From Podarcis muralis (lineage: Eukaryota): DNA of 64,000 nt. Numbering within the stretch: the stretch's first letter is position 1; the number at the start of each line of letters is the position of its first letter. The notes below the pieces were generated by a model, which was not told where the DNA came from, did not search any database, and was given only the letters and a program-made list of their open reading frames with translations. The stretch spans positions 54,622,001 to 54,686,000 of the forward strand of contig NC_135659.1 of the NCBI RefSeq assembly GCF_964188315.1, in the 5' to 3' direction. Positions 10,303 through 57,320 of this stretch are shown one piece after another. A program made the position numbers and the translations under genes.

Positions 10303-10303
<1 letters not shown>

Positions 10304-10341
<38 letters not shown>
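10304..10341. repeat. (TG)n microsatellite
   Basis: Uninterrupted TG run seen directly. Confidence 0.95.
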
Positions 10342-10344
<3 letters not shown>

Positions 10345-16479: not shown

Positions 16480-16918
16480 TATACATGATGACTGGAATGA
16501 AATACTAACTCATTTTTTAAATATTATTTCACAACTTACCCAAGTCCCTAACCATGGTCAGGCTTTGTCTGTTCAAGGGCCTTTCCCTTGATGCTGGGCT
16601 TTCATATTGAAAGAGGACAAACACTAAGGATGGAACCCTAATCCCATTTACATGGGAGTAAGTCCTATTGAATTCAATAGGACTTACTTCTAAATAGATA
16701 CACTGTAAGCCTTTAGCAGGCCTTTCACTTTTAGGAGATATAACAACAACAACAAAACCCACATGCGGTATTCTACCAAATTGCTCATTAAGAAGAAAAA
16801 CTGCTTCCAGGCTCCTGAGCAATAAATCCAAAAGCTTTGGGGATATTTGACAAGCTCTTGGTACTTATGCTTATTAATATTAAAATGGGAATTTCTTTAA
16901 AATGCTAATTGAATGAAT

Positions 16919-17007
16919 GCCCCAATCCTATGCACGTTTACTCAAAAGTAAGCCCCACTGAGCTCAGTGGGACTTAGTCCAAAGAAAGTGTGTGCAGCAT
17001 TACAGCT
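16919..17007. repeat. Short quasi-palindromic interspersed repeat (AATCCTATGCACGTTTACTC...AGTAAG...CCCACTGA family)
   Basis: Related copies at about 16620-16710, 61107-61262 (two in tandem) and 62149-62240. Confidence 0.55.
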
Positions 17008-21128: not shown

Positions 21129-21305
21129 CTCTTTGCAGGCGTGCAGCTCCTCTCCCGGAGTAGCGGCGCCTGCCCAAAGCAGCAACAGCAGAGAAAGCAG
21201 CAGAAGCGGCAGGCGCCTCCGCCCGAGCTCGGCACCAGGGAGGCACCGCCAGCACCCAGCTGTATCCGGCCGAGGAGGATGGACACCGCCAGCGGCCCCA
21301 GCCAT
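21129..21305 (-). CDS. ELAPOR1: ELAPOR1 (KIAA1324/EIG121) coding exon 1, signal-peptide exon; remaining exons lie left of the window
   Basis: ATG in ccacgATGG context. MAGAAGG...RRLPLLLLSLLLLLWAGAATPGEELHACKE ends exactly at GAG|GTACCG (phase 0) and matches the human ...LLLWAGT...GPELHACKE exon-1 end. Synteny with CFAP276 supports the call. Confidence 0.93.
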
Positions 21306-21482
21306 CGTGGCGCAGAAGCGGCACCGAGCAGCTTCCCCGCGCGTCTGGATGAGGCGGCCACCGACTCACAGGTGCAGCGGCGGCGGCGGTGGCAAGAGCA
21401 GCAGCAACAGCAAGCAGCGCTCTCAGGCGGAGATGGGATGCGGGAGCCCCGCCCCCTGCCCGCCTCGCGCCGCCCACACCTC

Positions 21483-21495
21483 GCTGCCTAGCAAC
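21483..21495 (+). promoter_or_regulatory. RFX X-box-like motif near ELAPOR1 5' end
   Basis: GCTGCCTAGCAAC, one mismatch from GTTGCCTAGCAAC. Confidence 0.5.
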
Positions 21496-21983
21496 CGCAG
21501 CTGCCTCCGCCGCGCCGGCCTCCGGCTCCCGCGCACCTGAGGCGGCTTGAAAGATGCGCCCGGGGGACAGAGGCCGTTTGCTGCTGGCGCGCGCGTCTTT
21601 CGAAGGGCGCGCTCGCCTCTTGGCGCGCTCGCCGCCGGCGCGTGACAGGCCGCGCGACCATAACAAAACAAAAGCCCGCCTAATTTTGAACAATAGGAAA
21701 CGGCGTAGCCGGAGGGAAAGAGGTTCAAGGGTTAGGGTGCAAGCCTAACGTCGTTGGCCCCCTGGGAGTCAGCCGCGCTGGATTCAGCAGGAGTTGCTTC
21801 TGAGTAGACGAGGGTTAGGCTCGCTCTGGGAACGACTAGGCCGCACCACCTGCTCAAACCACTCCAGGGGGCGAACAGCTTGAATTTGGGCGGGGGGCGA
21901 TTAAGCCCCACCCCACATAATCGATCACATGGCATACACACTATTTGAATGACGACGCACATCAACTCTGCGGGGACCGTTCC

Positions 21984-22444
21984 CAGTGCCGGATTTGCGT
22001 ATAAGCCAAATAAGATATAGTTTAGGGCCCCACTCTCTTGGGAGGGGGGAAATATTTAAAGGGGGGATAACTGGATGTACATTTCCAAAATATAGGATGA
22101 AAAACATTAAATAAGACCTACATACAGCAAGTGTTTCGCGTTGTGTAGGCTTCAATGATGCAAGCAATGGGCCTCCAATCATTTTAAGCTAGAGCTTAAT
22201 AATTATTTCACTATTCATATACAGTACTTCTTAAATGTGTTTCAGTTCAACAATTGCTTTGATTAAATACATATTTTATGTGCAAATGGCTTTAGATACC
22301 TATTAGGTCCATAAATTACCATATAGCATATATTCAACACCAAAAAACAGCAACAATTTGTTGTTGACAAAGGACAGCTGGACATATAAAGGGCCCCATT
22401 ACCTTCAGTAGCTTTGGGCCTCATCAAACCTAAATCTGGCCCTG
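21984..22444. mobile_element. hAT-like non-autonomous DNA element inside the head-to-head promoter interval
   Basis: Imperfect TIRs CAGTGCCGGATTT / AAATCTGGCCCTG, subterminal GGGCCCC motifs at both ends, and an AT-rich interior. No TSD found. Confidence 0.55.
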
Positions 22445-22924
22445 TTCAGCCCCCTCAAATATCTCATTGGATAGGCCGAAGGAACCTCGGGGCCGCCCCG
22501 TGGGAACTATTTGCTGTGAATCACTCGCAAAACACTTCCGCTCTTTAGGCTTAAAAGGACCTGGAATATTATGTTTGTTGTGACAGCTCAGATTTTTCCT
22601 CTTCTTCTGTTTTAACGGGCCTCCCAACCACATTTACAGAACGACTATGCCCACTGATGTGGTTGGTGTAAATGGGGTGCTTTCGGTGTGGGAAGCTTAG
22701 AACTGGGTACCGATCTATTTGCAGCGCAGATGTTTCATGATCTTTTCCTGGTTGGTGGTTTATTCGAGAGCACCACAGAACAGCAACAAACCACCGAAAG
22801 CCAGTTTCAAACAGCAGCGAAACTGAACATTGAAAGACGGGGAGGGGGATTTTGTTTTAAAAATCAGTTTTTCTCTGGAAAGCAGCAAGGAAGAAGCCTG
22901 ACCACTCTGCATTGGAAAAGTATT

Positions 22925-23007
22925 TCATTTTTATTTATTTTTAATAAATCATTTTTATTGGGTTTTACAAATACAAAGTACAAATAAACACAAATTAGGG
23001 GGGGAAA
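22925..23007 (-). mobile_element. Probable L1 3' tail fragment
   Basis: Minus strand reads CCCCCCTAATTTGTGTTTATTTGTACTTTGTATTTGTAAAACCCAATAAAAATGATTTATTAAAAATAAATAAAAATGAAA. Confidence 0.35.
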
Positions 23008-23751
23008 CGTATCTATATTGGAAGAGTATTTCCCATGCAGCTGCTATTTGCCACCAGCGAGGAGGTCCTGTCTCTTGGGTCTCACCAAAAGCCCGTCTTT
23101 TCTAACTCGCCATGCTATTGCACGGCCGCGTGCATCTGTTGCACGAGCGTGCTGCTCGGAATGGCGCGTGTCTTTGCACCAGGCCCTCCCTGATGTCTCT
23201 TCCTTTCTTTTCCCGGGAGGTAGGCGGCCGGGATGTTGTTTTAAATGTTCCTTCCCGCTTTTAGCATACCCACGCGGCTGTTATAAACCGGTTTTCCTCG
23301 CAAACGTTATTAACAGGGAACCCACATGCAAGTCTTTAAATAGGAAAACTACATGTGCAATTAAGAGCGAGATTAACTATTCAGTGCACTTGAACTACCA
23401 GCTATATAAAATCCTAAAAAAACCCAAACCTATTTTTGTAAATAAAATAATAATCCGCCAACGTCTTTTATTTCTGGGGATCGCGGCGTCAAGTCTGGAG
23501 CATCTTCTCTCCTCCCCGCCCCCGCCTCTCCAGATCTCTGTGTTGACTAGTCAGCTAATTACACGTCGCTCTCTCAGAAGACCAATAGCCTTGCGCCCTC
23601 CCATTTGCACCGTCCTCCTTTCCTGCTGCTGTTTATCCCTCCGGGAAAATTCTGACGTTTCCTTCCCTGTGCCGCTTTTTGTGCTACTATTCCCAGCCAT
23701 TAGAGGGCGCCTTAGAGAATGTGCTGCGGGCTCTAAAAGCCCGGGAAGACG

Positions 23752-23764
23752 GTCGCTTAGCAAC
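23752..23764 (+). promoter_or_regulatory. RFX X-box upstream of ciliary gene CFAP276
   Basis: GTCGCTTAGCAAC about 93 bp upstream of the ATG. X-boxes are established promoter elements of ciliary genes. Confidence 0.65.
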
Positions 23765-23856
23765 CGCCGCCGGTTCCTAAACAAACCTGACACGCGGCGA
23801 GAGGGAACCCGCGATCTGCTTTTGCTGCCGCCACTGGATCGCCCATCCTCTGGAGC

Positions 23857-23937
23857 ATGCCAACCACCAGGGACCCCTTTCCATTCCCACACTATGAAAA
23901 TGAAGAGACCTGCACGGGCAGCAACAGATGTACCCAG
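23857..23937 (+). CDS. CFAP276: CFAP276 (C1orf194) coding exon 1
   Basis: MPTTRDPFPFPHYENEETCTGSNRCTQ, then CAG|GTAAGA. The human protein starts MPPTRDPF. This frame is not in the ORF track. Confidence 0.9.
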
Positions 23938-25429
23938 GTAAGAGGGCCACCTATTAAGAATGCCCTCACCCATTTAAAAACATTTTAAAATGCACCCCTT
24001 TACATTTATATTAACAAAGCGCCTAAAGTCATCCTCATGCCACTGAACCTCTTTGGCATTATTGCAACTCTTGCTTCAACCTGACCTCATTGCTCTACTG
24101 TCAGGTGGTAAACGTTATTTGATTGTATTTTTTTTATCCTGCTTTTCAGACAAATATTGCCACCTAAAGAAGCTCAGGTCAATTGTTTGTTTCATTTTTC
24201 AGTAGATTTTATAAGTCTCAAAACAGTTTGACAATAAAACTATTTAAAAGCAGAGGAAAAAACACTAGCAGAGAAGTCTGAACCTGGCAACTAACAGATT
24301 TTATTGCTTTGTTTTTTTGTAAATTGCTTTGAGGTTTTTTACGATCAAGCAGTGTACTAATTTTATGTAACAAACAAATAAATAAAAACTGACGAAAATG
24401 GTAACAGGCATCTCTCCCTAGCAACAGCATTCCATAGACAAGAACACAATGGAAAAGGCCTTTTGTTGTGTTTGATTTTTTTTAAAAGAGACACAAGACT
24501 CAGGCTTACAAACCAAAAAAAAAAAAGGGGGGGGAGATACACAATAGTTTCAAACCAGGCATTTATACGCACATTTGGGCCAGGCCATTCTTCACTTGTG
24601 GTGTTTTTCACAGAAATGCAAAGGAAGGATGCAAAAAGAGCCCATTTATGCTGAAGTTTAACCAAACTATTAACCTGGATTAAAGGGGTTTTGAATGGGA
24701 GGAATGTTATAGTCCTGCTTAACTTTCACTGGGTAGAGGAAACGTCTTATAAAAAATAAAGATTGATTAAAAGGAAACAGAGGGAAAGACAAAGCAAGAG
24801 GGTTAGATATCTTCAGAACACTTGGGAAAGGGGGAGGAAGGGTTATCCAAAACGACAGTAATAGAAGCTGAGCTAGTACATATACTGCAGATCAGGAAAG
24901 ACGTCACAAAATCCAAAATAAGGCCAGAGTGATTAGCAAATGAGAACAAAAACAAAAAAGACAATTTTTTGCAAAACAAATGCAAGCAGACAATGCAAAA
25001 GTAAGGCATTGAGGAGCTAATCACGAAAACCATTAGGACTAACAATAATAAAATGCTTTCAATACACCAGAATCTGGAAAGCAACTAGAGAAGACCCCCG
25101 GGTTTACAGATTTAACTGGCCCTTGGACCTCTCCTCAAGCCACTCCCCTCTCATGGGTCACCCCCTTACTTGGCTCCCTGAGCATTTTCCCCTGATTGCA
25201 GTTTGTCCTGGAACTCTGATAATGCCACTTCCTTGCTTGCATGTGCAAACCAGCCTATCGTAGAAAGGTAAAATGTGCACGTTGCTTTGCCTACTTTTGT
25301 CTCTGCCTCCAGCCACCATTGGCATATGGCCCTCAGAAGGTTGCAGAGAAGGGAATGTGTCCCTTGGGCTAAGAAAGAAGCTTTCCTACTCCTGCCAAGG
25401 AATATTTGTCCTGGTTTACTGGCCGCACT

Positions 25430-25941
25430 TAAAGCATCTTAAAAAGTAGAGACATCACCTTGCCAACAAAGGTCCGTATAGTAAAAGCTATGGTTTTCCC
25501 AGTAGTGATGTATGGAAGTGAGAGCTGGACCACAAAGAAGGCTGATTGCCGAAGAATTGATGCTTTTGAATTATGGTGCTGGAGGAGACTCTTGAGAGTC
25601 CCATGGACTGCAAGAAGATCAAACCTATCCATTCTTAAGGAAATCAGCCCTGAGTGCTCACTGGAAGGACAAATCGTGAAGCTGAGGCTTCGTGAATACT
25701 TTGGCCACCTCATGAGAAGAGAAGACTCCCTGGAAAAGACCCTGATGTTGGGAAAGATGGAGGGCACAAGGAGAAGGGGACGACAGAGGACAAGATGGTT
25801 GGACAGTGTTCTCGAAGCTACCAGCATGAGTTTGACCAAACTGCGGGAGGCAGTGGAAGACAGGAGTGCCTGGCGTGCTCTGGTCCATGGGGTCACAAAG
25901 AGTCAGACACGACTAAACGACTAAACAACAACAACAACAAC
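25430..25941 (+). mobile_element. BovB (RTE) LINE, 5'-truncated 3' end
   Basis: Open frame ...TLPTKVRIVKAMVFPVVMYGSESWT...FGHLMRREDSLEKTLMLGKMEG...HGVTKSQTRLND* is the BovB RT C-terminus. (CAA)n tail; TSD ACTGGCC(G/A)CACT at 25418-25429 and 25942-25953. Confidence 0.95.
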
Positions 25942-35666: not shown

Positions 35667-36045
35667 ACGCGGGTGGCACTGTGGTCTAAACCACTGAGCC
35701 TCTTGGGCTTGCCCATCAGAAGGTCAGCTGTTAGAATTCCCGCAACGGGGTGAGCTCCTGTTGCTCAGTCCCAGCTCCTGCCAACCTAGCAGTTTGAAAG
35801 CACACCATAAGTGCAAGTAGATAAATAGGTACTGCTCTGGCGGGAAGGTAAACGGTGTTTCCGTGCGCTGCTCTGGTTTCGGTGTTCTGTTTTGCCAGAA
35901 GCGGCTTAGTCATGCTGGCCACATGACCTGGAAAAACTGTTTGTGGACAAACACCGGCTCCCTCAGCCTGTAAAGCGAGATGAGCACCACAAGCCCAGAG
36001 TCGTCTGCGACTGGACTTAACTGTCAGGGGTCCGTTACCTTTTTT
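35667..36045 (+). mobile_element. Sauria SINE, subfamily A
   Basis: CGCGGGTGGCACTGTGGTCTAAACCAC head, GCAAGTAGATAAATAGGTAC core, GTCAGGGGTCCGTTACCTTT tail. Confidence 0.92.
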
Positions 36046-37632: not shown

Positions 37633-37715
37633 TCATTTTATAAAGAGGACATAAAAAGCCATTACAATGCAGGATATTGCCACTGCTGCATGGAGTCTAG
37701 TACCAATCACTGCCG
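37633..37715 (-). CDS. TMEM167B: TMEM167B terminal coding exon
   Basis: ttttccag|(A)[26 protein letters not shown], nearly identical to the human kish-B C-terminus. Confidence 0.97.
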
Positions 37716-38483
37716 CTGGAAAACAAAAGAGACATTTACACATTTACAAGTTGTAACAGTATAGAGCACACATTACCTCTTCGAATTTTTGTGAGAATTA
37801 AGCATAAGCACTAGATTGTCTTTATTACCACATAAACTAAAGCAAGGACATCAAACTCAACTATGCTGGAAATCCAAATTCCCCACCAAGTAATTGCCTA
37901 GTGACAATATTAGTAATGGTTAATGGGGATGGGGAGAGATGCAAATTCTGTCTGAACTGAACAGTAAGAAGTTCTACCTCACCGAGTACCATACTTGTTG
38001 CTTACCACTTACTAAGTTCTGTTCTACTGAAGTTAGTATTTTTCTTACAGCAGCCTTAACAATTTTGTTTGCTCTTAAGAAATTAAATGAAGCTGAGAAC
38101 CAAGATTTATTATGCACTTGCCCTGTTGTAACCTAGAGATCCTAGGAACAAGAGGTTCCCCACGTCCCTCAAAAAACCAGCTATCAAAACTCACCATAGA
38201 ACAAATCATCAAACCCCCACTCTCTGAAGCAACCAATCATATAAACAAGCCTGTTGTGATGCATCCCAACTCACAATGCAGACGCTTCCTAAGCTTAACT
38301 CCATTCTACCAACTGTCAGGAACATTTCCTTGAAGGTTTGTTTGTTCGTTTAACATTTTATAGCATGAAATAGGCAAAGAAGTTCCTCCTCTCCTGGCAG
38401 TTTGGGAAGGCTGCCCAGACTTGTTCCCACCCATTTCGCCTTCCCTCCCGGTTGAGCCCTGGGGTTGAGAGCGAGAGGCTTAC

Positions 38484-38615
38484 CTTTGTAGAATACCCCC
38501 CAGACGCCCCTCTTCTCCGAGAGCAGCCAGACTTTCAGCCGAGGCACCTTCCGGAAGTAGGCGCAGGTGCACACGAAGAGCAACCCGAACACCAGCAGCC
38601 CGTCCAGCGAATACA
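38484..38615 (-). CDS. TMEM167B: TMEM167B coding exon 2
   Basis: ttgcag|(V)[43 protein letters not shown]|gtaagc, phase 1/1. Confidence 0.97.
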
Positions 38616-38868
38616 CTGCAAGGGAAGAGAGACAGAGAGGCCGTCTTGAGTCAGGGCCTCCCGACTCTTAAGGGTGGCGGGCAGCGGGGGGGGGGGCGTC
38701 TAGCGAAGAAGCCCCCGGGCCAGCCTCTGGCCCTCGCCCCGAGGGCGACGCCCCGCGCTGGAAGGTGGGGGTGGCAGTTAGTCAGGGAGGAGGAACGAGG
38801 CGCAGGGTCACTTTGCGGGACAGCCCCCGCCCGCTGAGGCAAACCCCCACCCCACACCCCCGTCTCAC

Positions 38869-38878
38869 CGTTAGCCAT
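38869..38878 (-). CDS. TMEM167B: TMEM167B coding exon 1 (ATG GCT AAC G)
   Basis: MAN then |gtgaga. Exons total 10+132+83 = 225 nt = 74 aa + stop, the same length as human TMEM167B. Confidence 0.93.
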
Positions 38879-39232
38879 GACGGAAACCCGCAAGGCCCAG
38901 ACCAGGTCTCGTCACCGCATCGCCCAGAATGAACGAACGGCCAGCGCGGCACCGGAACTTCCAGTGCCGCCAATAGAGCTCCGGCGATGGAGCGCTCTCT
39001 ATGGTTCGCCTCTTCCTAGAAAGGTGGGTGCGCTTGTCGCGGCGCCAAGGCAGCACTAGCAGAAGGACGGCTGGTCGATTTGTTTCGAGAGCGCCGTGGC
39101 TTGTCAGCGGCGGGTCTCGCGACCGGATTTCCTGCTGTCTTGTGTTTTCGTGCTGTCTTTTGTTTGAAAAGGCAGTGCAAAAATCCGGGACTGTGTTGTT
39201 GAAGGGCTGTTTGGCAGCCACACGTCTTACCC

Positions 39233-39285
39233 TTCTCCTTCTTCTTCTTCTTCTTCTTCTTCTTCTTCTTCTTCTTCTTCTTCTT
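39233..39285. repeat. (CTT)n trinucleotide microsatellite
   Basis: Long CTT run immediately upstream of the TMEM167B CpG island. Confidence 0.95.
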
Positions 39286-39497
39286 TTAAAGGGGGGGGGT
39301 AGTATTTTAAACTCGATTTTCTTGTGGGATGCGAACATGTGAATGGGGCGGACTCACCTTTATTCTAGCTTTTTTTTCTTAATCGCCCTGCAGATGATTC
39401 TGTACTAGCAGAAAAATAAACTGCTCAATACTGTTATAATTTTCTTATAGCTAATGCGGGGAGCGACGCTTACAACAACCCTGCCATGCAGTCCAGT

Positions 39498-39805
39498 GGT
39501 AAAGGTAAAGGGACCCCTGACCATTGGGTCCAGTCGTGGCCGACTCTGGGGTTGCGGCGCTCATCTCGCTTTACTGGCCGAGGGAGCCAGCAAACAGCTT
39601 CCAGGTCATGTGGCCAGCATGACTAAGCTGCTTCTGGCGAACCAGAGCAGCACATGGAAACGCCATTTACCTTCCCGCTGGAGCGGTACCTATTTATCTA
39701 CTTGCACTTTGACGTGCTTTCAAACTGCTAGGTTGGCAGGAGCAGGGACCAAACAACGGGAGCTCACCCTGGCACGCGGATTTAGACCACAGTGCCACCC
39801 ACATC
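39498..39805 (-). mobile_element. Sauria SINE, subfamily A, internally deleted
   Basis: GGTAAAGGTAAAGGGACCCCTGACC tail through ACCACAGTGCCACCCAC head; part of the B-box region is missing. Confidence 0.92.
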
Positions 39806-41342: not shown

Positions 41343-41366
41343 ATGGGGGCCTCCCAGTCAAAACGG
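41343..41366 (+). CDS. FAM107-like gene, proposed coding exon 1 (MGASQSKR)
   Basis: gagccATGG Kozak context and strong CGG|GTGAGT donor, phase 0, compatible with the exon at 45353. Inferred from splice logic, not homology. Confidence 0.6.
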
Positions 41367-41752
41367 GTGAGTAGCTTTCTTGTTGATGGTCTGATAAAGG
41401 GGATGAAGCCTGTGTCTGTCATATCCCTGACATCATGACGAGATCTTCTTGATCAGTCGGTCACATTCTGTTGCGTATACAGTCTTTGAACTAAGTCTAC
41501 ATGACAACAGAAGCATGGCAATACGGCAATCTATAAAGCAATCTCTCGAGAGGCAGAGGTGTTTCTGATGGCTGACAACTGTGGAATATTCTTCTGCTGG
41601 GGGCTCTTGGAAGCTTAACCCTGAGCTTTTCTTAGAAATACTATATGACCTTTTTATTTGGGCTTAATCGTTTCATCTTGACTGCTTCTAAACTGATGAG
41701 TGGATGGGCTTTGTGTAGTCTGAATGAATAATTAACTAAATATAATAATTTA

Positions 41753-42012
41753 CTGTATTTTTCGCTCTATAAGACGCACCAGACCACAAGACGCACCTAG
41801 TTTTTGGAGGAGGAAAACAAGAAAAAAAAATATTCTGAATCTCAGAAGCCAGAACAGCAAGAGGGATCGCTGCGCAGTGAAAGCAGCAATCCCTCTTGCT
41901 GTTCTGGCTTCTGTGATAGCTGCGCAGCCTGCATTCGCTCCATAAGACGCACACACATTCCCCCTTACTTTTTAGGAGGGAAAAAGTGAGTCTTATAGAG
42001 CAAAAAATACGG
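41753..42012. mobile_element. Tc1/mariner (pogo/Tc2-like) MITE with internal palindrome
   Basis: TA-CTGTATTTTTCGCTCTATAAGAC ... GTCTTATAGAGCAAAAAATACGG-TA. Internal 24-bp perfect inverted repeat at 41844-41867 / 41889-41912. Confidence 0.88.
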
Positions 42013-42395
42013 TAAATCTGAAATGAACAATATACTGTAAATTAGACCTCAGGGCTGACCCAAGTCATTTTGCTTCCTGAAGTGAAGGACAAGATGCCAT
42101 CCCCTCTATTCCATGAACAGCAGCCACCCAGCTTGGCCACTGAATCTTCCTTGACTACTGGGGATGGAACAGACACCGTATGGAGTACAGGGCAGTCTGT
42201 ACTCCCTATAGCTGTACCATTTCACTATTCAAGCTTCATTAGGGGCTAAGTACTCCCCCCCACTGGTGTCCTACAGTGTGAGAGCAAAGACATTTTTTTA
42301 AAAAAAAATGTGAGCACCAACAAGGCTGCTTCTACCTCAGAAGCAATTTCTCTTTATATTTCCTCTCCTCCTCTGTCTCCTGTATTTCCCTCTCA

Positions 42396-42460
42396 TGAGT
42401 GCCGCACCCCATAGTCGCCTTTGACTGGACTTAACCGCCCAGGGGTCCTTTACCTTTACC
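42396..42460 (+). mobile_element. Sauria SINE 3' fragment
   Basis: ATGAGTGCCGCACCCCATAGTCG...AGGGGTCCTTTACCTTTACC. Confidence 0.75.
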
Positions 42461-45352
42461 CTCCTCTAGCACTGAACCACACATTTCTCTTACATTTACT
42501 GAAAAGCCAAGATAGGGAATAAACATATTGTTCAATTGTTATGCTACTCACAGAAAGACTAAACCCTCCATTACATCTGGACTATGTAGAGGATGTGGCA
42601 TCTCACACACTAGAAAACGGTGCTGTCATATTTCTCAGAAGTGCAAAAGATGGGAACTGTTGTTCACCCACAGTGCAGATGGACATAGTGTCATACAAAT
42701 GCTTTGTGTTAATCCTCTGGTGACCTCTCTTCAACACAGGGCTGTTATGGTGTAAAAAGTAATTGTGTCAGACCTGTCCTGTTACATACAGGTGAAGAAA
42801 ACCGTTCTTGCCCCCACAAAACAACCTCCTGCAGGGATAAACTCCTAGATTATACTTAATCCTGCTTCTATGTCTAGTCATCATTTTCACTCTTACGTTG
42901 ATCCACTGAACCTATCCCCTTTCCTCTCCACAGCCACCTAACCAAAATCCTAATTGAAAGGGATGAGGTAGATCTGCCAGAAAGGCTACTTTTAGAGATG
43001 GTTTGTTCACACTTCAGCTGAAGAAAGATGAAACTTTGTCTTTCTTAGGGCTCGCTCAAACTGTTGCTTAATTCGGTAGTAAGTTTCCTGTAACTCCATG
43101 AATTCTCCACCATCCATATGACAATCTCCATATCACTGCCTTCCCACACGTTCCCCTCCCTCAACCTGGATTTGCTCATAGGAATGCTCTGAAAAGGAGA
43201 GGGTATGAAAAAATCCAGATCAAGGGAGAGGAAAGTGTGGGAAGGAAAACGTCATATGGACAATGGAGAATTAATGAGGGCACATTATCCACATAAAACA
43301 ACAGTATGGATGAGCTTTTAATTGGCGCAGAGCAAAGCAACACTGATCAACATTTCAAATCTAATAAAAGGGGAGAGATTGGGTCTAAAGGCAGAAGGAA
43401 TACTGATGAAGATGCATTTATGTTCCTGAACTTCATAGGCATGGAGATGATGGTTTTGAGGACAACTTTAAAGCAGCTGAGCTAGTTTTCCAGGGAAAGA
43501 GCCACATCAGGTGAAGGGGAGCAGTACATGCCATTCTTTAAGCATAACTGCTGAAACTTGGCATCTAAGAAATCCTTAACAGGAACGTTTGTCTTTTCCC
43601 CGAATGATGTATTCAATCTGTTGCTGCTGCAGTACATTCCTCTAGCAAATGTGTTGTTTGTCTTTGGAGATTTAAACCTGTAAGGATCAGGCAGGGCCAA
43701 CTCTATGATTATGTGGAGGGAAGCAGCTGTCTCAGGTAGTGAATGCAGCTGCCCCACCCCCATTGCTCCTGAACCTCCCCCCAGCCATTTCTCCCATCCT
43801 CCTGAACTGACACCCTGGCAGTGGCCAGCAGTCTCACCTAGTGATCTCCCAGTGCATATCCTTGACCTAGCAAGCAGGAAGAGAGGCAGCCAGCCCAGGC
43901 TACACACCCCAGAAGGCACTATGTATGTGAATGTATTTCTTGGCACACATGACTGATGCTGAGGCATCCTTTGTCTGAGCAGGCAGCAAATGGGTACCAG
44001 GCAGGGCAGTGACTGAACAGGCAGCAGAAGGTTTTGGAGGACAGAGCATGCTCTGAGCTAGTCTGTTGCCCTCAGTTTCAACGGTGGAGACTGCCTCACC
44101 ACAAGTGTTGAAGTAAGATTTGACTGCCTGTCTGGTCAGCTTCTCTATGGTGGAATATGTGGTGGGGAGATTGTTTGTGTTATCATATCCTTTGCCTCAG
44201 GCAGCAAAATGGATTGGACGGGCCCTGGATATGTGCTAGGGATGTTCTGCTTTGCCCGCAGCTCCATATGATTAGGATGTAGAAGAAATAGATGTTGGTT
44301 TTGTCTGACCTGCTGAAAGTCTATGTGCAGGTACATTAACAGAAGTACTCATTTGCTCCTCTGTAAGACCACGCAGGGGGAAAGTAATGAGGATGCTTGG
44401 GCAGAAGCTCAGAACGCTCTTGTATAATGCCCCCCCCATGTGTTGTTAGTCTCTTCTCAGTGTCCATTAAATGTCTGGGAGTAGGCAGGGTAGGCCTGCT
44501 GGCATCTATGCCATTATAATAGTCTTGCATTGTTTACTTTGGATGAGGCGGCCACAAACCTGAGCCTGACAGATGACAGGCTAATCAGCAGTGGCTTAAA
44601 AGGGAAATCTCATCGGAGATGGAAAACCTAATCTTTCAAAGCTGCACAGATAGACCAAGGGATCCAGAATAGCTTCATCAGGTTGAGATGATCCTGTGTG
44701 AATGATCAGGGCAAAAAGAAGAGTTGGGCAAATTAATGTCATGTGGAAAGTAACATGGGGTTAGGAAAATGCACAGGCATCAGGTGTAAGGCAGCCTATT
44801 AGCACTGTGGATGGTGGAAAAGCTTGATTTGCAAAGGAAGGAAGGTCTGTGGGCAGCAGCTGGGTATTCCAGAGCCAGATGCGAACTGTAGTATCTGGAC
44901 TCCTTTCCTATAGAAGGCAGGCAGGTGATTATGAGGGTTATTCTAATGATTTTGGGTTCAGCTAGAGGGTATGTTATAGTGACTGGCCCAAATATGGTCT
45001 GCATTTTATTCTGTCTGGCTCCTTTCACCTGCTAATTTCACAGCACTTTAGTAACATTGGCAAAGAGCTTTATTTTTTCACAGAGACCTTGGTATAAAAC
45101 CTTCATGCATTAGCCAGTGAAAGAGCTGGAGATCTAGCACCAGGCACTGGAGTGTTTCAGCTGTTCGCCTCCACTTGTATATTTGTAAACAAACTGCAAT
45201 ATTATAAAATGTCATAAGCCTCCCATGATCTCCTTTCAAAGGAAACCAAACCAGGGTGAGCACTATACCCCTGGGACGCAAGTGTGGTAAAAGAAGAAGT
45301 GCAAGCATTTGTTGATCCATTGCTTTTTGAAATGCTGCCTTTTCTGTTCCAG

Positions 45353-45389
45353 GGTGAATGCAGAACTCAGAAGAGCAGTCTGAACCCAG
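45353..45389 (+). CDS. FAM107-like gene, proposed coding exon 2 (GECRTQKSSLNP)
   Basis: Strong acceptor ttttctgttccag and donor CAG|GTAAGA; 37 nt, phase 0/1, in frame with the next exon. Confidence 0.65.
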
Positions 45390-46395
45390 GTAAGAGTATT
45401 TTACAGCATGGTGGGGGTACCCTCTTCAATCCAAGGGCTACATTCTCTTATGCGGGGAGTGCTTGCCAGTGGTGGGTGTGGCCAAAGATAAAAGTGGGCA
45501 GTGCAGTGCATGTGGCGTTTACCTTTATACATGGGTGGGGGCCAGCTGTCTGTCCTACAGTCCTAAGCAAAAAGCAGGGGAAGTGGTTATAAATATGGGG
45601 AGAAACTATGCAAGCATTTCGACCTGGGGGGTGGAAAAATGGGGGTTGTATTCCTCTTACTCACTGAATGTATTAATTGGCCATAGCAGCAAAAGTCTGT
45701 TGTATGATGCATAGGATGGCATCTATTCAGCCTGTGACTATTGGAACTTGCTCCAAGTACTCTTTTGGGGTCTAAAGGGTTTTTGCATATGATCAAAATA
45801 AGTGTGCCCCTTTATTTAGCTTCTTGTTGTTGAAAGCTCTGTGCTGGGGGGGGGGGGGTAAAGTGCCTTGTTAGAGGTAGGGAATGCTGGATGATTCTCT
45901 TCCAGGTCCTTGCCAGTATTGCATGTGTTCATTCCATTCTGTCCAGCTTTTCCATCACCTTGTGAAACTTTTTAAAAACCCACATAAAATTTCCTATTTT
46001 AAATGTCATTCACATGATCATTTTTTAATGGAGATATAAACAGTTTATCAAGGTTTTCATGGTTAAATAATGATATAAATGTGCTCCGGAGTGGTGAAAA
46101 AAGAGGTAGCAACCATAGATTTCAGGTACTGAGATGTTCAGTGGTGGAATTTGTGGTTTCGCCACATGGGGGTGCATTTGTATAATAATAATCTGTGTGG
46201 AAGACTTAACAAAACAGAAGTCTTGATGGAGCATCTGTGACTGACCTGATGTGTCATTTGCATTACAATGCCAACCCTGTCTTAAAGGATCTCAGAAATG
46301 GAAGTGCATTCAAGCCCACACTTCAACTGCATGTGAATTGCCTTGTTCTCAACCAAGTCATTCAGTAAGCCCCAAGTATTGAGGAAGATCTACAC

Positions 46396-46648
46396 CATGG
46401 GTAGGCAAACTAAGGCCCACAGGCCGAATCCAGCCCAATCGCCTTCTCAATCCGGCCCGCAGACGGTCCGGGAATCAGCATGTTTTTACATGAGTAGAAT
46501 GTGTCCTTTTATTTAAAATGCATCTCTGGGTTATGTGTGGGACATAGGAATTCGTTCATTTTTCCCCCTTCAAAATAATAGCCTGGCCCACCACATGGTC
46601 CGAGGGACGGTGGACCAGCCCACGACTGAAAAAGGTTGCTGACCCCTG
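46396..46648. mobile_element. hAT non-autonomous DNA transposon
   Basis: Perfect 8-bp TSD ATCTACAC (46388-46395, 46649-46656); termini CATGGGTAGGCAAAC / GGTTGCTGACCCCTG. Confidence 0.88.
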
Positions 46649-47086
46649 ATCTACACTATGATAGGCCTATCCAAGCCATTTCATTAACATGTAGAGATCT
46701 TTCCACAGCTGACTACTGGAATAGTTAGGGGACAACATGGTTTAAGAAAACAGCAACGGGGAAGACCAACCTAGCCCCACCCATGGACCAGAGAGGGAGC
46801 AGCTTCAGGGAGTTATGATGCTGGGGGTCAGACTCCCCCATCTTCAGTGGGTAAGGCCAGGGATTCAGAGGGGAAGAGAAAATGACTCTCTGTGGGGAGA
46901 GTGCTGTTGACATTAGGTCCCACTTTACACCAGTCTGGAACCCTTAAAGAAGAGCAGGTTAAAAATACTTTCAACAAATTGATGCTGAACAGCTTTGTAG
47001 TCAATTTACAGTATGAAAGCAGAGAGGAAATTTTGTAATGAATTTTCTGAAGGCTTCAAAACTGTTGTTATGCCATTATGTTCCAG

Positions 47087-47234
47087 AAGGAGACACCAGA
47101 AGCTTTGAGCATGGCACCTACCAGGCATCTGAAAGCCACAGGAGCCTCATTGAGCCTAAGAAACTGCCAAACCCAGTGAGGGAGTCCAAGCACCATCGGG
47201 AGTTGCACCGGGAACTGATTTTCACTCAAAGGAG
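47087..47234 (+). CDS. FAM107-like exon 3
   Basis: ttccag|EGDTRSF...SLIEPKKLPNPVRESKHHRELHRELIFTQR|gtgaga, phase 1/2. Matches the FAM107 motif [25 protein letters not shown]. Confidence 0.92.
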
Positions 47235-47581
47235 GTGAGAGTGTCTTTAATCCAGGAATTGCAGTAGTTTAGGCACTAAAGCTTTGAACAGAGAACATAC
47301 CATGCATTGGCCCCTGAGGTGTACCACAAAATGGTGCCTCCCTGGCCAGGGAAGAAAAGTTGAGTGAAGATCTGCATTGGGAACAAGGCAGGGAATCAAA
47401 TCAATCTTACATGACTGTTGGCGTGAGAATCCAAGGCTGCCAGAGGGCAGGGGCTGCTCTGAATCATACCAGGGTGGTGCAGAACCCAGGAGATCCCAGA
47501 GGGTTGTAATATGTCCTCTTTTTCCAGGACGCTTCCTCTTTTTCATGGGTAGAGTCGTCATAGCGATCCATAGTTATAAGT

Positions 47582-47942
47582 AAAGGTAAAGGGACCCCTG
47601 ACCATTAGGTCCAGTCGCGGACGACTCTTGAGGTTGCGCGCTCATCTCGCTCTATAGGCCGAGGGAGCCGGCGTTTGTCCACAGACAGCATCCAGGTCAT
47701 GTGGCCAGCATGACTAAGCCGCTTCTGGCGAACTAGAGCAGCACACGGAAACACCATTTACCTTCCCACCAGAGCAGTACCTATTTATCTACTTGCACTT
47801 GACATGCTTTCAAACTGCTAGGTTGGCAGGAGCTGGGACCGAACAACGGGAGCTCACCCCGTTGCGGGGATTCAAACTGCCGACCTTCCGATCAGCAAGC
47901 CCTAGGCTCTGTGGTTTAGACCACAGTGCCACCCACGTCCCT
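47582..47942 (-). mobile_element. Sauria SINE, subfamily A, full length
   Basis: Complete head to tail; 12-bp TSD ATAGTTATAAGT (47570-47581, 47943-47954). Confidence 0.95.
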
Positions 47943-48274
47943 ATAGTTATAAGTGGAAGTCTGCAAATGTGTCCTCTTTTTTGCTCTTCAAAATATGGCA
48001 ACCCTAAGAGGACAGCCCCCGCCATTTCCTCCCTAGCGGTGGATGGAGACCAGTAATGCCTCCTACTTGCAAAGAGGCGGCATTGGGAAGGGGCTGCTGA
48101 GGAGGAGGCAGATCTAGCCTCCAAGGAGCATGCCATAGCCATCGCTGCTACTGCAGGAGCAGGAGCAGCAGCAAGTGATGTATTCCTTGGAGGCCTAATT
48201 GGCAGTCCTTCTGGATCCTGCTGCCCAAGGTGGTGGCCGCACCTTGTCTCATGAGTGGCCAGCCCTGTGTTTAA

Positions 48275-48400
48275 AGCACATTTAAGGCATGTGACTTCCC
48301 CCATAGAATCCTGGGAGCTGTAGTTTAAGAGTGCTGGAAGGTGTAGCTCTGTGATGGATAAACTACAGCTCCTATTATTCTTTTGGAGGGGGTGCTGCAA
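48275..48400. repeat. Short interspersed repeat with ACTACAGTTCCCAGGA core
   Basis: Related copies at about 49220-49270 and 56405-56525. Confidence 0.5.
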
Positions 48401-48890
48401 AATCAGGGGAAATGATCCTGCAGGGATCCACAAACCAAGACACAAAACACCAAGTGTAAATAAAATAAGTAGCACAATCTCTGTTGGGTGTGGGCCCATG
48501 GGATCTCTCTCAAAAGCACCTAAATCTAGCGTCCAGTATGGCAACTCGGGTGTCCACTGAGCCAAATAAGAAAGGGATTTTTGCCCAATACACAGGAGAG
48601 AAACCACATTGGGACCCCCAATCGACTTGATTGGGCACTGGAGGAGGAGGGATTGGAAAATAACAGTCCAATTCTTACGGAGCCCATATTTAGTTCTTCA
48701 TAGGTCTTATAAGTTAAGCATGTGCCCAAATATAATACAGTTAACTTATTTTGTCAGGAGAACCCTGGGTTATCATGGAATCTGGTGAAAGTCAATGGGA
48801 TGAAGAAGGGGGGAGTAGAATAACAGGCATTGTAGAAGAGAAGAAAGGCTCATAAACGTCTGCTTCTGTGCTGTGTTGTCCTTTCTGTAG

Positions 48891-49035
48891 GGGGATCCTT
48901 CCAGAACACAAGCCCGAGCTTCAGAGAGTTCTAGAAGCCAGAAGAATCAAGCAGCTGAAGCAGCAGGAAGAAACCCAAAAGCCCTTGACAGATCTGGAGG
49001 AAGAGCTGAGAAAACGACAGCAGAAGCTTGACCAG
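48891..49035 (+). CDS. FAM107-like exon 4 (coiled-coil core)
   Basis: ctttctgtag|GILPEHKPELQRVLEARRIKQLKQQEETQKPLTDLEEELRKRQQKLDQ|gtcttt, phase 2/0. Matches FAM107 KPELQRVLE...EQELLRRQQRLNQ. Confidence 0.93.
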
Positions 49036-49550
49036 GTCTTTATCATCTGTTCCCCAGTTAGCTTTTCTGGATGTATCACAACATCAAGTTTGTCTTATAA
49101 CTACCTCCATCCTACGGTGATCAGTCCATATTATTAATCCCTCTCACACACCCAGCTCATCAAGCCTTATTTGTCTTCCTAGCAAAAACAGCATCTAATC
49201 ACAAAGAATCCATTTTACCCCCACAGAGCTACAATTCCCAGCACCCTTAAACTACAGTTCCCAGGATTATTAGAGGGTGTAGTATCTACATTGTATAGTA
49301 CCCTTCTCCCTTGTGGCAGCCTTCCCCTCAGGTGTGACCAGCATCTCCTCTCTCAGTTCCTTCTCCATCGTTCATCTTCAGAAATAAAGATAGTCAGTTC
49401 TCCTTCCAGGCCCAAACACACACACAGTTTTGATATTACGCAGACCCTGTCCTCCAAGCACCTCTTCCCTTCTGGTAAGCAGATATTGCTGTGTTTTTAC
49501 TGTTTCAAAAACATACCAAATCAGTTTTAATCAGAAGTGACAATGGGACA

Positions 49551-50245
49551 CAAAGGTGGAGAGCAAGTATAGTACCCACTAGGAAGAAAGGCAGTGTAAA
49601 ACGTTCAAATATGCTGAACTGGCTGGTCTGACAAACAGGATAAGAAAAAACAAAGATAAAGAATACAAGGAGGAATGGACAATGTTTACTGAATATTTTA
49701 AGAACCAATATAAGCAAAAACATAGCTTAGCAGGTCTCGAGTAAATCCAGCAGAGTTGAAATATAGTATTTAATAGGTAACAAATTAGATGATTAAAAAG
49801 TTGCGGATTAAGCGGAGTAATAGAAAAGCAAAGGAACCAGGAAAAGGGTGGAAGGGAAGTCATAAAGGTAAAGGTAAAGGTACCCCTGCCCATACGGGCC
49901 AGTCTTGACAGACTCTAGGGTTGTGCGCCCATCTCACTCAAGAGGCCGGGGGCCAGCGCTGTCCGGAGACACTTCTGGGTCACGTGGCCAGCGTGACATC
50001 GCTGCTCTGGCGAGCCAGAGCTGCACACAGAAACACCGTTTACCTTCTCGCTAGTAAGCGGTCCCTATTTATCTACTTGCACCCGGTGGTGCTTTCGAAC
50101 TGCTAGGTTGGCAGGCGCTGGGACCGAGCAACGGAAGCGCACCCCGCCGCGGGGATTCGAACCACTGACCTTTCGATAGGCAAGCCCTAGGCGCTGAGGC
50201 TTTTACCCACAGCGCCACCCGCGTCCCTCAAGGGAAGTCATATGA

Positions 50246-50284
<39 letters not shown>

Positions 50285-50350
50285 GTAAGTGGGACAGGGG
50301 GAGGGGAGTTAAATATGCTGTTTTTGAAAATGCAAAAAAAATATGAAAAA
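49551..50350 (+). mobile_element. 5'-truncated L1 (ORF2 C-terminus plus 3' UTR) carrying a nested Sauria SINE
   Basis: Translates QRWRASIVPTR../..KYAELAGLTNRI...KEEWTMFTEY...LAGLE* (stop 49742-49744), resembling squamate L1 ORF2 ends. A-rich tail; 18-bp TSD AGAAGTGACAATGGGACA (49533-49550, 50351-50368). Confidence 0.75.
49865..50229 (-). mobile_element. Sauria SINE, subfamily B, full length
   Basis: GGTACCCCTGCCCATACGGGCC-type tail; 13-bp TSD AAGGGAAGTCATA (49852-49864, 50230-50242). Confidence 0.95.
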
Positions 50351-50371
50351 AGAAGTGACAATGGGACAAAA

Positions 50372-50416
<45 letters not shown>
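50253..50416. repeat. Two (TG)n microsatellites
   Basis: Runs at about 50253-50282 and 50375-50416. Confidence 0.95.
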
Positions 50417-50419
<3 letters not shown>

Positions 50420-50635
50420 CCATGGGCAGCAATGCCTCCCTCAAGCATTTTCAGTCCTATCAAAATTGTTGCTAAAGCCAATGTCAATGAAGCTCAGGAG
50501 TGAGTGTACGACTTTCATTTAATCAAACAGTAGGGGCGTTGGGTTTTGCAATAGGTTGCAGCCTCATGTTTGTGCAGAATTGTCTCTCTGGCTAGAACTA
50601 ATGAAAAGGTGTTAAACATTTCCCCTCCTTTACAG

Positions 50636-50752
50636 TATGAAAGGGAGCTGGTCTTGAAGGGCGAGCAAGATGGCCGGCCTGAGTTCATCCTCGTCAAAGA
50701 GAGCCTGAGGAAGATAAAGCTGTCTACAGAAACGGACATCAGGCAGACATGA
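50636..50752 (+). CDS. FAM107-like terminal coding exon
   Basis: cctcctttacag|YERELVLKGEQDGRPEFILVKESLRKIKLSTETDIRQT*. Matches FAM107 PEFIKVRENLRRI. The five-exon model totals 471 nt = 156 aa + stop. Confidence 0.92.
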   Translation, partial: YERELVLKGEQDGRPEFILVKESLRKIKLSTETDIRQT

Positions 50753-52043
50753 GAGCCAGGTGACCGCAAGTGCAGTTTCTATCCGAATGGCTCCTTGATG
50801 GAAGATCACACGGAGGAATCCTAAGATGCACCGCAGCCTCCCTTTGCTGGCCTGCAGAGCCCCTGCTCAGGTTAACTTCAGGCACTGGGCAGCAGGAGAA
50901 AGTCGGAAGCAAGGACTAGCCTCGTGGTGGCTTTGGGTGGAGGCTGGCTGTCATTCAGCCATGACAGTTAAGGAAACATGGAGACGAAAGGGCAGATTGG
51001 AATCTGCAGTGGAGGCGGTGACTTGGCATGGCTGCCTTTTTAGTTTTTTTTGGGGGGGGGAGGGTTGTTTGTTGTTTGTTTTGCTACTCAGTAATGCATC
51101 ATTACAAAGAAAATACTCTTCTTCTTTTCTTTTTTGCATTCCAAGCCTTACTAGGCTCCCATCTGACCAAGGCCTCTCTTTTCTCTTTGTAAAAATGTTG
51201 ATAATGCTCTTACCTGATAGCTCCAGTGTCAAATTTTCTATGCTTAGATTGAGATATAACCCACCATTAAAGCTAACTTTGGCATGGAGAAACGTGAATG
51301 GTCTAGTGGGGAGATGCATGTTTGCAACTGTATTAGGCTCATGGATCTATAATATACGCCAGATAATGTTTTCTGCTGGCCTCAATTTCCTACCTATAGA
51401 ATTAAGGGAACGATTTCAAGTGTCTCACAGGTCACCATCCAGGAGAAAAGCATTAAGGACGGTGAGATACTCAAGTAGAGGCACAAATAACAGGCGGATG
51501 AACTTGGGATGGTTTGAGATGGTGGGAAAGGGTTGGGAAGCTTCCTTAGCCTGGCAAAGAGTTAAAAACGCAAGCTTAGCCTGGCAAAGAATAAAAAATG
51601 CAGGTGTGGAGGCAGGACTGGTTGTTTATCTTATCTGGAAGTACTGGTAAGAACCACAGCAAAATTGCTAGCAGGAGGTGAGTTACAGTTCATGATGCTA
51701 TTTGACCTGTTCATCTGGAGACGCTGCCATCAGTTGGTTTCAGCATATGTTACCCTTATTGCTCTCCTTATTATTCATCATTTATATAGATCTCTCTTCG
51801 AGACAGGCTGCCCATGCGCCCTTTCACACTCCTCTCTTTGAAGGCATCCTCTGTTGGGTGGGCTGGCCAGTCCAAGCCCAGTTTGAAGACAAAGCAGGGA
51901 AAGAAGGGAGAGGAGGGCGTTAGTCAACAGCCCCCAGGAAGCAGACTGAACAGGCATACACAGGCCACCTGGCCACAGCCTTCCTCATTATGGTGGGGTG
52001 CATTGTATTTCTATTTAAATGATAGGAATTATTTATATATCTA

Positions 52044-54119: not shown

Positions 54120-55241
54120 ATGGAACCTGCTCAGATGGTGACTGGATCATCGATGACTGAAACCTGGAGCGGAGATTTTGAGTCATCAGCTATAGACAAT
54201 TATGGTGACCTGGTGAATTATGACATTTGCCCCCTGCAAGAACTGCCATTTGCCTATATCTTTATCCCCACTGTCTACTACATTACTTTCCTCATTGGTT
54301 TCTTCGGGAACCTCTTTGTGATCCTGTTGATGGCACGAAAGGAAGGCCGGAAGAGGCTCGTGGACACCTTTGTCCTCAACCTGGCCGTGGCTGACCTGGT
54401 CTTCGTATGCACCCTGCCTTTCTGGGCTGTATCAAAAGCCCTCGGTTACTGGTGCTTTGGCGAGGGGCTATGCAAGTTGAGTAGCTACGCCATCACTGTG
54501 AACCGTTGCTCTAGCATCTTGTTCCTGATGGGCATGAGTGTGGAACGCTTCCTCGTGATGACCAAGCAGTGGGATTCCAGAACCATCAGCACCAAGAAGA
54601 GCATAGCTGTGAGCTGTGGTTGCATCTGGGTGTTCTCCCTTCTGCTGGGGATGCCATCTCTATTCTACAGAAAGTTGAACCCGGTGGATGACAAGTATTT
54701 GTGCCATGACATGCCCTCCCCCACCTTCAGCTTGATTATGCTCTTCTTGACCTTCCTCCTGCCTTTGGGAGTAATCTTGTTCTGCTACTGCTCTATCTTC
54801 TCCAAGCTTCGGAGCCATGTCCACCTAGGCAAGAGGAGAAACAATGCCCTCAAGATCATCTTTGCCATCGTTGGAGCATTCATCTGTTCTTGGCTGCCCT
54901 TCAACGTGTTAAAGCCATTCTTCGTCTTCACCATGGCCCAGGACATCCATCTCTCCTGCTCAAAAATGATGGCTCTCACGTGGGGGCTGACCATCAGTGC
55001 TTGCCTGGCATTCGCAAACAGCTGTGTTAACCCTATCATCTATGTCTTTATGGATCAGCAATTCCGACAGCAGGCCCTGAAGCATTTCCCTGCTTTCTGC
55101 AGCAAAAGGGGAAATGTGCAAAGTTCAGCCCTGTCCTTTTCATCCACAGACACGAGCCTCCTATTTGCCAGCAGGAAGAAGCCCACACCAGCAACATCAG
55201 CTCGGGTAGGAGACCCAGAGAGCAAAGGGGTAGGTTTGTAA
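54120..55241 (+). CDS. GPR25: GPR25 / GPR25-like class A GPCR (GPR15/apelin-receptor subfamily), single coding exon
   Basis: 373-aa ORF with 7 hydrophobic segments; RLVDTFVLNLAVADL, TLPFW, LCKLSSY, GMSVERF, PSLFYR, SWLPFN, LAFANSCVNPIIY. Colinear with recalled human GPR25 (RLVDTFVLHLAAADL, WGLTIATCLAF). The true start could be Met1, Met6 or Met12. Orthology versus close paralogy is not resolved. Confidence 0.85.
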   Translation: MEPAQMVTGSSMTETWSGDFESSAIDNYGDLVNYDICPLQELPFAYIFIPTVYYITFLIGFFGNLFVILLMARKEGRKRLVDTFVLNLAVADLVFVCTLPFWAVSKALGYWCFGEGLCKLSSYAITVNRCSSILFLMGMSVERFLVMTKQWDSRTISTKKSIAVSCGCIWVFSLLLGMPSLFYRKLNPVDDKYLCHDMPSPTFSLIMLFLTFLLPLGVILFCYCSIFSKLRSHVHLGKRRNNALKIIFAIVGAFICSWLPFNVLKPFFVFTMAQDIHLSCSKMMALTWGLTISACLAFANSCVNPIIYVFMDQQFRQQALKHFPAFCSKRGNVQSSALSFSSTDTSLLFASRKKPTPATSARVGDPESKGVGL

Positions 55242-56685: not shown

Positions 56686-57320
56686 GAAAAGCCTATCAGA
56701 CAAAATGGTCTTCAGTTGTTTCCGGAAAGTGCAGAGAATAGGTGCCTGACATATCTCATACTATTCTGAAGAACAGAGGCAGCTGCACCAAATTTGCTGC
56801 TTCCAGTTACCGTGGAACAGACCTCTGACATCTTTTGAACCTGCAGAAGCTGTGCCGCAGACCTCACGGTGACTTACTGGGTATATAAGGGATAATAAGG
56901 TGGTCTCTGAGGGACGCGGGTGGCACTGTGGGTTAAAGCCTCAGCGTCTAGGACTTGCCGATCGAAAGGTCGGCGGTTCGAATCCCCGTGGCGGGGTGCG
57001 CTCCCGTCGTTCGGTCCCAGCGCCTGCCAACCTAGCAATTTGAAAGCAGCCCCGGGTGCAAGTAGATAAATAGGGACCGCTTACCAGCGGGAAGGTAAAC
57101 GGCGTTCCGTGTGCTGCGCTGGCTCGCCAGATGCAGCTTGTCACGCTGGCCACGTGACCCGGAAGTGTCTGCGGACAGCGCTGGCCCCCGGCCTATAGAG
57201 TGAGATGAGCGCACAACCCTAGAGTCTGGCAAGACTGGCCCGTACGGGCAGGGGTACCTTTACCTTTTAAGGTGGTCTCTCAGGTTGCCTGGTCCTGAGC
57301 TGTACAGGCCTTATATGAGA
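56686..57320 (-). mobile_element. Degraded L2-like LINE fragment interrupted by a Sauria SINE
   Basis: AAAAGCCT...GGTCTTCAG...GCAGACCTCA...GTGGTCTCTCAGGT...CCTGAG pattern resembling squamate L2 3' regions. A similar remnant lies at about 39940-40050. Confidence 0.4.
56909..57267 (+). mobile_element. Sauria SINE, subfamily B, full length
   Basis: GAGGGACGCGGGTGGC head with GGTTCGAATCC B box; 13-bp TSD TAAGGTGGTCTCT (56896-56908, 57268-57280). Confidence 0.95.

Follow-up and report, generated by a model that had tools for sequence, protein, structure and literature searches.

A FAM107 gene beside TMEM167B in the lizard Podarcis muralis very probably belongs to an ancient clade lost in mammals

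A stretch of 64,000 nucleotides from the lizard Podarcis muralis (assembly GCF_964188315.1, contig NC_135659.1, positions 54,622,001 to 54,686,000; hereafter the window, numbered from its first letter) carries a gene of the FAM107 family between TMEM167B and GPR25. This gene is very probably the lizard orthologue of an ancient third FAM107 clade, here called FAM107C. With the same high confidence it is regarded as intact and transcribed, as older in origin than the last common ancestor of living jawed vertebrates, as standing head-to-head with TMEM167B since that time and as lost in mammals; a family-like role at actin and membranes would go with it. The clade is a new, unnamed member of a known family, although automatic genome annotation has long included the gene, under names that mislead. 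In the databases its orthologues are called 'FAM107B-like', 'FAM107B', 'member A', 'FAM107A' or 'FAM107B isoform X2', and in Ensembl/UniProt the Podarcis muralis models are 'member A' and the Salvator model is 'FAM107B'; the zebrafish gene of the clade goes under a 'fam107b' form. The gene is thus already annotated by NCBI and Ensembl, but inconsistently named. No description of a third FAM107 paralogue, or of FAM107 as an ohnolog or as lost in mammals, was found in the literature searched.

Gene model, conservation and transcription

The coding sequence runs on the + strand from 41343 to 50752 in five exons (Table 1). Every intron is bounded by GT..AG, the phases match and the total comes to 156 codons. 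A direct joint of exon 1 to 47087 gave the wrong phase, which was fixed by the short exon 2; the first three exons then add up to 209 nucleotides (24+37+148), and the two leftover bases are joined by one base of exon 4. Assignment to the family is carried by the Pfam domain DUF1151 (PF06625), which matches exon 3 at profile positions 2-31 (E 3.7e-10, 40.3 bits) and exon 4 at positions 34-81 (E 7e-12, 45.8 bits). Each match exceeds the gathering cut-off of 25 bits, and the profile positions adjoin. Scored with the hidden Markov model (HMM) of clade C, the clade that holds the orthologues of this gene, exons 3, 4 and 5 reach 70, 81 and 48 bits, exon 5 alone being too short for Pfam. A sequence-only reading of the window had proposed a protein of 156 residues whose FAM107 domain is encoded by three exons with canonical splice sites and consistent phases. 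Base reading and the Pfam matches uphold the three domain exons, the three peptides it quoted are all located in + strand open reading frames (ORFs) where it had placed them, and its 156 residues equal the sum of the present model. The count of coding exons had to be raised to five by adding two short 5' exons upstream.

Two observations concern the 3' half of the gene. A further donor that keeps the reading frame is found 21 nt past exon 4; the NCBI model of Zootoca (163 aa) takes the site equivalent to the 49056 donor, and the transcript contig from the window takes the one at 49035. Intron 4 contains two microsatellites, which an Ensembl Podarcis muralis model seems to enter as a false last exon; read mapping passed over this sequence as a repeat.

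Homologues were collected by a word search whose query was a natural 93-codon open frame around exon 4 (region 12-60), and an alignment of full-length annotated orthologues was then fed into a second word search and an exhaustive profile search. The window gene was compared exon by exon, its place in the trees being taken by annotated orthologues (Zootoca and others). Proteins of Podarcis muralis and Zootoca vivipara match exon 4 at 100% identity, exon 1 is the same as in Zootoca at 24/24 nucleotides, the exon 5 peptide is the same in Zootoca, and the exon 2 peptide agrees with the Zootoca, Salvator and Pogona models. Annotated orthologues with 82-85% overall identity and a common N-terminus (MGxSQSKRGEY) are present in Zootoca, Salvator, Pogona, Hemicordylus and Eublepharis. 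A colinear comparison of the window with the Zootoca locus revealed 97-100% identity in the coding exons and 85-95% in flanking and non-coding DNA, and the ratio of non-synonymous to synonymous rates (dN/dS) between the two genes is 0.20 (4 synonymous and 3 non-synonymous changes). From skate to bird, 13 alignment columns are invariant in 20 species, and a scan with the clade-C HMM recovers three exons of 35-82 bits each, with the same profile boundaries, in the window, rhea, gar, turtle, milkfish and skate.

RNA reads and transcript contigs were mapped over one stretch only, 44950-50900. A spliced contig from run X1 (2807 nt, depth 26.6) aligns in four blocks (44950-45385, 47083-47232, 48889-49032 and 50633-50900) with GT..AG at each joint, so that the last three introns are spliced out exactly as predicted, and its 3' untranslated region reaches at least 50900. 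Raw reads of run X22 span the junction 45389>47087 (2 reads) and the next one (1 read). The X1 contig is colinear across the acceptor at 45352 and has a further 1654 letters upstream, which points to a long alternative 5' exon or to a retained intron 1. An isoform of 155 aa that begins MLPFLFQ+GEC... and is devoid of the MG start would result from the ATG at 45332, which is in frame and has the same surroundings in Zootoca. The junction of exons 1 and 2 falls outside the mapped stretch and therefore rests on comparative evidence: the window, Zootoca, rhea, gar and skate all have, in the equivalent place, a 24-nt exon of the form ATG-GGN...(K/R) with GTGAGT or GTAAGT directly behind it.

Deep read piles at 46343-46740, 47537-48332 and 49726-50322 were considered as exons and ruled out, these being interspersed repeats. 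An interspersed repeat of about 360 nt occurs in five copies on both strands (Table 1); the copies are 72-83% like those of the Zootoca locus and have very deep RNA-seq and contig coverage that is unrelated to the FAM107C exons.

Table 1. Features of the window (positions count from its first letter)
Feature	Position	Strand	Details
FAM107C coding exon 1	41343-41366	+	24 nt, 8 codons MGASQSKR, donor GTGAGT; read base by base
FAM107C coding exon 2	45353-45389	+	37 nt, GECRTQKSSLNP plus 1 base; AG acceptor, GT donor
FAM107C coding exon 3	47087-47234	+	148 nt; N-terminal part of the FAM107 domain (LIEPKKLPNPVRESKHHRELHRELIFTQR)
FAM107C coding exon 4	48891-49035	+	145 nt; central helical part, presumed coiled coil (KPELQRVLE...RKRQQKLDQ)
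FAM107C coding exon 5	50636-50752	+	117 nt including TGA stop (YERELVLKGEQDGRPEFILVKESLRKIKLSTETDIRQT*); AG acceptor, phase 0
Alternative long 5' exon or retained intron 1	44950-45389	+	X1 contig unbroken 44950-45385
Alternative exon 4 extension	49036-49056		VFIICSP, then GTTAGC
Microsatellites in intron 4	50239-50423		two (CA)n/(TG)n
TMEM167B	37636-38616	-	coding exons ~38485-38616 and 37636-37725; Pfam DUF1242 E 2.8e-11 on 38485-38616
GPR25	54120-55241	+	single-exon G-protein-coupled receptor (GPCR); Pfam 7tm_1 E 1e-57
Trinucleotide repeat	38871-39342		poly-Arg on one strand, poly-Leu on the other
Interspersed repeat, ~360 nt	47579-47944, 49868-50228, 39498-39790, 35667-36045, 56910-57267	both	five copies
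GC-rich island	20001-22000		GC 0.55; upstream of the TMEM167B region
Overlapping ORFs	25429-25924	both	+ strand product ends ...RTRWLDSVLEATSMSLTKLREAVEDRSAWRALVHGVTKSQTRLND

Four FAM107 clades

The family was analysed by a FastTree of 235 members and by a quick and a careful IQ-TREE run on 85 chosen rows, the latter under the model LG+C20+F+G4 with posterior mean site frequencies (PMSF); clade support is written as ultrafast bootstrap (UFBoot)/Shimodaira-Hasegawa-like approximate likelihood ratio test (SH-aLRT). The careful tree resolves four gnathostome clades, namely A (93/88), B (92/97), within which a lamprey/hagfish pair is nested, C (99/97), which contains the orthologues of the window gene, and D (97/96), which has long branches. 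Genes from Lingula and a crab root outside all four. Clade C comprises skates, rays, sharks, coelacanth, sturgeon, paddlefish, gar, bowfin, teleosts, salamanders, turtles, crocodilians, birds and squamates, and its inner branching broadly matches the species tree. Mammals and frogs were not seen among its members, neither the word search nor the exhaustive search of predicted proteins returned a mammalian protein that falls in it, and the FAM107 proteins found for platypus belong to clades A and B only. The presence of cartilaginous fishes in clade C, together with the position of clades A and B outside it, dates the splits to before the last common ancestor of living jawed vertebrates.

Predicted proteins of squamates include FAM107A in Podarcis muralis, Paroedura and Sceloporus, and FAM107B in Anolis carolinensis, Vipera and Varanus. 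The maximum-likelihood tree agrees with the sequence-only reading in putting the gene outside clades A and B and in a clade of its own; a gene inside A or B in a species with no other copy, which would indicate a simple translocation, is not what the tree and the separate squamate copies reveal. The proposed third paralogue was correctly seen as a separate ancient lineage, but it is not the sole third one, the family having at least four ancient clades. Similarly, the suggestion of a retained whole-genome-duplication paralogue holds in its timing, with cartilaginous and bony vertebrates in clade C and invertebrate genes outside all clades, and in no further part. An origin in the first and second rounds of vertebrate genome duplication (1R/2R) fits this timing, which is the whole of its support.

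The named members of clade D are Latimeria H3AUT6, Engystomops GDO81_003775, a gar 'FAM107B-like' and a Megalops 'FAM107A'; no mammal or sauropsid is among these 4 named rows of 8. In Megalops (tarpon; locus 10001-12253) the clade D gene lies between a 5'-nucleotidase-family and a GlcNAc 2-epimerase-family gene.

Gene order and absence from mammals

The order TMEM167B (-), FAM107C (+), GPR25 (+) is common to the window and Zootoca. Both neighbours, named already in the sequence-only reading, are borne out by matches to Pfam DUF1242, Pfam 7tm_1 and GPR25; the window GPR25 is 96% identical to that of Podarcis lilfordi and Zootoca vivipara, and its best matches are all named GPR25. In rhea the order is ELAPOR1, TMEM167B, FAM107C, a GPCR of 357 aa taken as GPR25 by position, and a CUPID-domain gene (INAVA-like). 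Milkfish and the skate Amblyraja each have a TMEM167 gene (-) immediately upstream of FAM107C (+), and the FAM107C loci of gar and turtle have no neighbour genes within 10 kb. The head-to-head pair in skate, milkfish, rhea and lizard indicates that the pairing is as old as clade C. Between the starts of TMEM167B and FAM107C lies a GC-rich stretch, which is presumed to be a bidirectional promoter. The same region has a trinucleotide repeat (Table 1).

Platypus has TMEM167B followed by a GPR25 model without a DUF1151 gene between them. Searching this interval by tBLASTN with 19 family proteins gave chance-level matches only, and the clade-C HMM on its six-frame translation scored at most 4.9 bits, compared to at most 10.6 bits in shuffles. 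Two candidate remnants were rejected: matches to 'EHRPESQ' fall on either strand and are out of order, and a 34-aa match to FAM107C exon 3 (locus 11901-11996) has an E of 0.72, which is at chance level. The source of the latter match is an exon of the platypus GPR25 model (locus 10001-24712), which with 476 aa is longer by about 100 residues at the N terminus, these being taken from exons as far as 13 kb upstream, and is probably over-extended. Within 10 kb on either side of one rodent GPR25 no FAM107C-like sequence was found. The proposed absence from mammals holds in the sense that no mammalian protein fell in clade C in these searches and that no recognisable remnant is present in the platypus interval. 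Adjacency of TMEM167B and GPR25 without a FAM107 gene in platypus implies that the mammalian lineage lost the gene at a time when the order of its neighbours was still intact. Human TMEM167B (presumably at 1p13.3) and GPR25 (1q32.1) we take to be apart, and their separation would be a later event. Losses in mammals of genes found throughout vertebrates are common, so the result is useful for annotation and evolutionary work and is no surprise.

Alternative explanations, predicted function and known relatives

A duplicate of FAM107B that is specific to sauropsids or to tetrapods is what the NCBI name 'FAM107B-like' suggests, and the careful tree does place clade C as sister to clade B, with weak support (81/87). 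Such a duplicate is nevertheless very improbable. Clade C, with skates, rays, sharks, coelacanth, sturgeon, gar, bowfin and teleosts among its members, is as old as jawed vertebrates; linkage to TMEM167B exists already in skate; and a union of sauropsid C with amniote FAM107B costs 57.5 units of log-likelihood and is rejected by the approximately unbiased (AU) test (p 8.9e-5). The 'member A' label of Podarcis muralis and the 'FAM107B' label of Salvator would suit a FAM107A or FAM107B orthologue that was merely relocated in lizards. Next to no credence is given to this explanation, since a separate FAM107A of Podarcis muralis groups with bird and mammal A and the FAM107B of Anolis, Vipera and Varanus with turtle, bird and mammal B, and identity to the two paralogues is just 46-57% per exon. 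The individual values (57/53/50% to amniote FAM107A and 48/55/46% to amniote FAM107B) confirm the earlier impression that the gene is about equally distant from both.

A weightier objection, which is still unlikely to be right, accepts the third clade and derives it from an old small-scale duplication instead of 1R/2R, or takes clades C and D for artefacts of fast evolution. Support for the branching that links A, B, C, D and the cyclostome genes is indeed weak (54-81), and the rows of clade D are long branches. On the other side stand the four gnathostome clades set against the invertebrate outgroups Lingula and crab, and the A/B/C splits before the living jawed-vertebrate ancestor, a timing expected of 1R/2R. 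Human 1p13.3 and 3p21-p14, we assume, have GNAI/GNAT and CELSR paralogues in common. That this lizard has only a decaying or non-functional copy is improbable to a high degree: the near-lack of bulk RNA reads and the intron 1 sequence kept in the assembled transcript would agree with decay, but the 156-codon frame is open, all splice sites are intact, the last three introns are correctly spliced, and the exons are better conserved than their flanks, with the low dN/dS and the invariant columns given above. Several findings do weigh against an intact, transcribed and anciently distinct FAM107C that was lost in mammals. Bulk RNA runs X21-X23 are almost without exon signal and have 1-2 junction reads, and the sole well-covered transcript, the X1 contig, skips the exon 2 acceptor, so that the MG isoform is not seen there. 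The dN/dS estimate is based on just 7 substitutions, and the absence from mammals on predicted proteins, one monotreme interval and the 10 kb flanks of one rodent GPR25. A frog and teleosts have an MG-type first exon in some of their FAM107A isoforms as well, so this kind of start probably goes back to the family ancestor and is no peculiarity of clade C. Actin binding and myristoylation of FAM107C are inferred by analogy.

A bolder picture, whose chances are put at below even, joins four FAM107 ohnologues (A-D) at the start of jawed vertebrates with a bidirectional FAM107C-TMEM167B pair kept for more than 450 million years. It would add a myristoyl-plus-basic anchored actin bundler with an unanchored isoform, and a clean mammalian loss before the monotreme-therian split with the flanking TMEM167B-GPR25 synteny intact (one monotreme interval). 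Were this picture true, mouse and human studies of DRR1 and FAM107B would cover only half of the ancestral repertoire.

The proposed function follows DRR1 (FAM107A), a small helical protein with a coiled-coil region that binds and bundles F-actin (PMC6321462). An AlphaFold2 model of the Salvator orthologue (156 aa), made with 20 clade members, is a set of extended helices (pTM, the predicted template modelling score, 0.25). Helices are predicted at residues 57-72, 78-99, 104-131 and 134-144 with a per-residue confidence (pLDDT) of 71-93 within them, and residues 1-40 are disordered; the model thus has the small, mostly helical form with a long central helix of the family. A search for a solved structure of a relative returned none that is related (best E 0.09). 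Like DRR1, FAM107C would be a small helical protein, probably dimeric by its coiled coil, that binds and bundles F-actin via both ends. The peptide MGASQSKR fits the PROSITE-type pattern for N-myristoylation, M-G-{EDRKHPFYW}-x-x-[STAGCN]-{P} (G2, S6), and basic residues follow. This motif begins 17/94 clade-C rows and is internal in 8 over-extended models; written as MG-x-[STFL]-[QH]-[STGA]-[KHR], it begins many clade-C proteins or lies within their over-extended models, and an MG start occurs in 0/56 clade-B rows. Judged by its conserved first exon (MG-x-S-x-x-K-R/K), the main isoform is probably N-myristoylated and basic at the N terminus, and the myristate and basic residues would tether it to the inner face of membranes. 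The second isoform, with its internal start, would be without the membrane anchor.

With FAM107A (DRR1/TU3A) the gene has in common Pfam DUF1151, the helical architecture and about 50-57% identity per exon. The two differ in that FAM107A forms a separate clade, squamates carry both, FAM107C has no mammalian member, and the FAM107C locus, unlike that of FAM107A, adjoins TMEM167B and GPR25. We take the human FAM107A locus to be at 3p14, and we assume that the domain is split over three coding exons in FAM107A and FAM107B too, as computed for FAM107C. FAM107B (HITS) has the domain and size class in common with FAM107C, in addition to the weak sister position and the database name, and is set apart by the rejected union, by the lack of an MG start and by its separate copy in squamates. 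Clade D is like clade C in having no mammal among its named rows and unlike it in its other neighbours in Megalops and its long branches.

Fam107B has been called 'the paralog' of DRR1 (PMC6321462), and research on stress resilience, neural progenitors and cancer treats FAM107A/DRR1 and FAM107B as a family of two. In zebrafish, chicken or lizard, an experiment directed at 'fam107b' or 'FAM107A' may strike a gene without mammalian counterpart, or such a gene may compensate for the one targeted. Current names mislabel FAM107C, and a symbol of its own would avert false orthology calls. The gene may also allow the membrane-anchored form of a minimal actin-bundling protein to be compared with a free one in naturally occurring isoforms.

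Two features lie farther from the gene (Table 1). Going by the gene order in rhea, ELAPOR1 could begin on the - strand at the GC-rich island that lies upstream of TMEM167B. ORFs overlap on both strands at another site, and the + strand product presumably resembles the tail of a retrotransposon ORF2.

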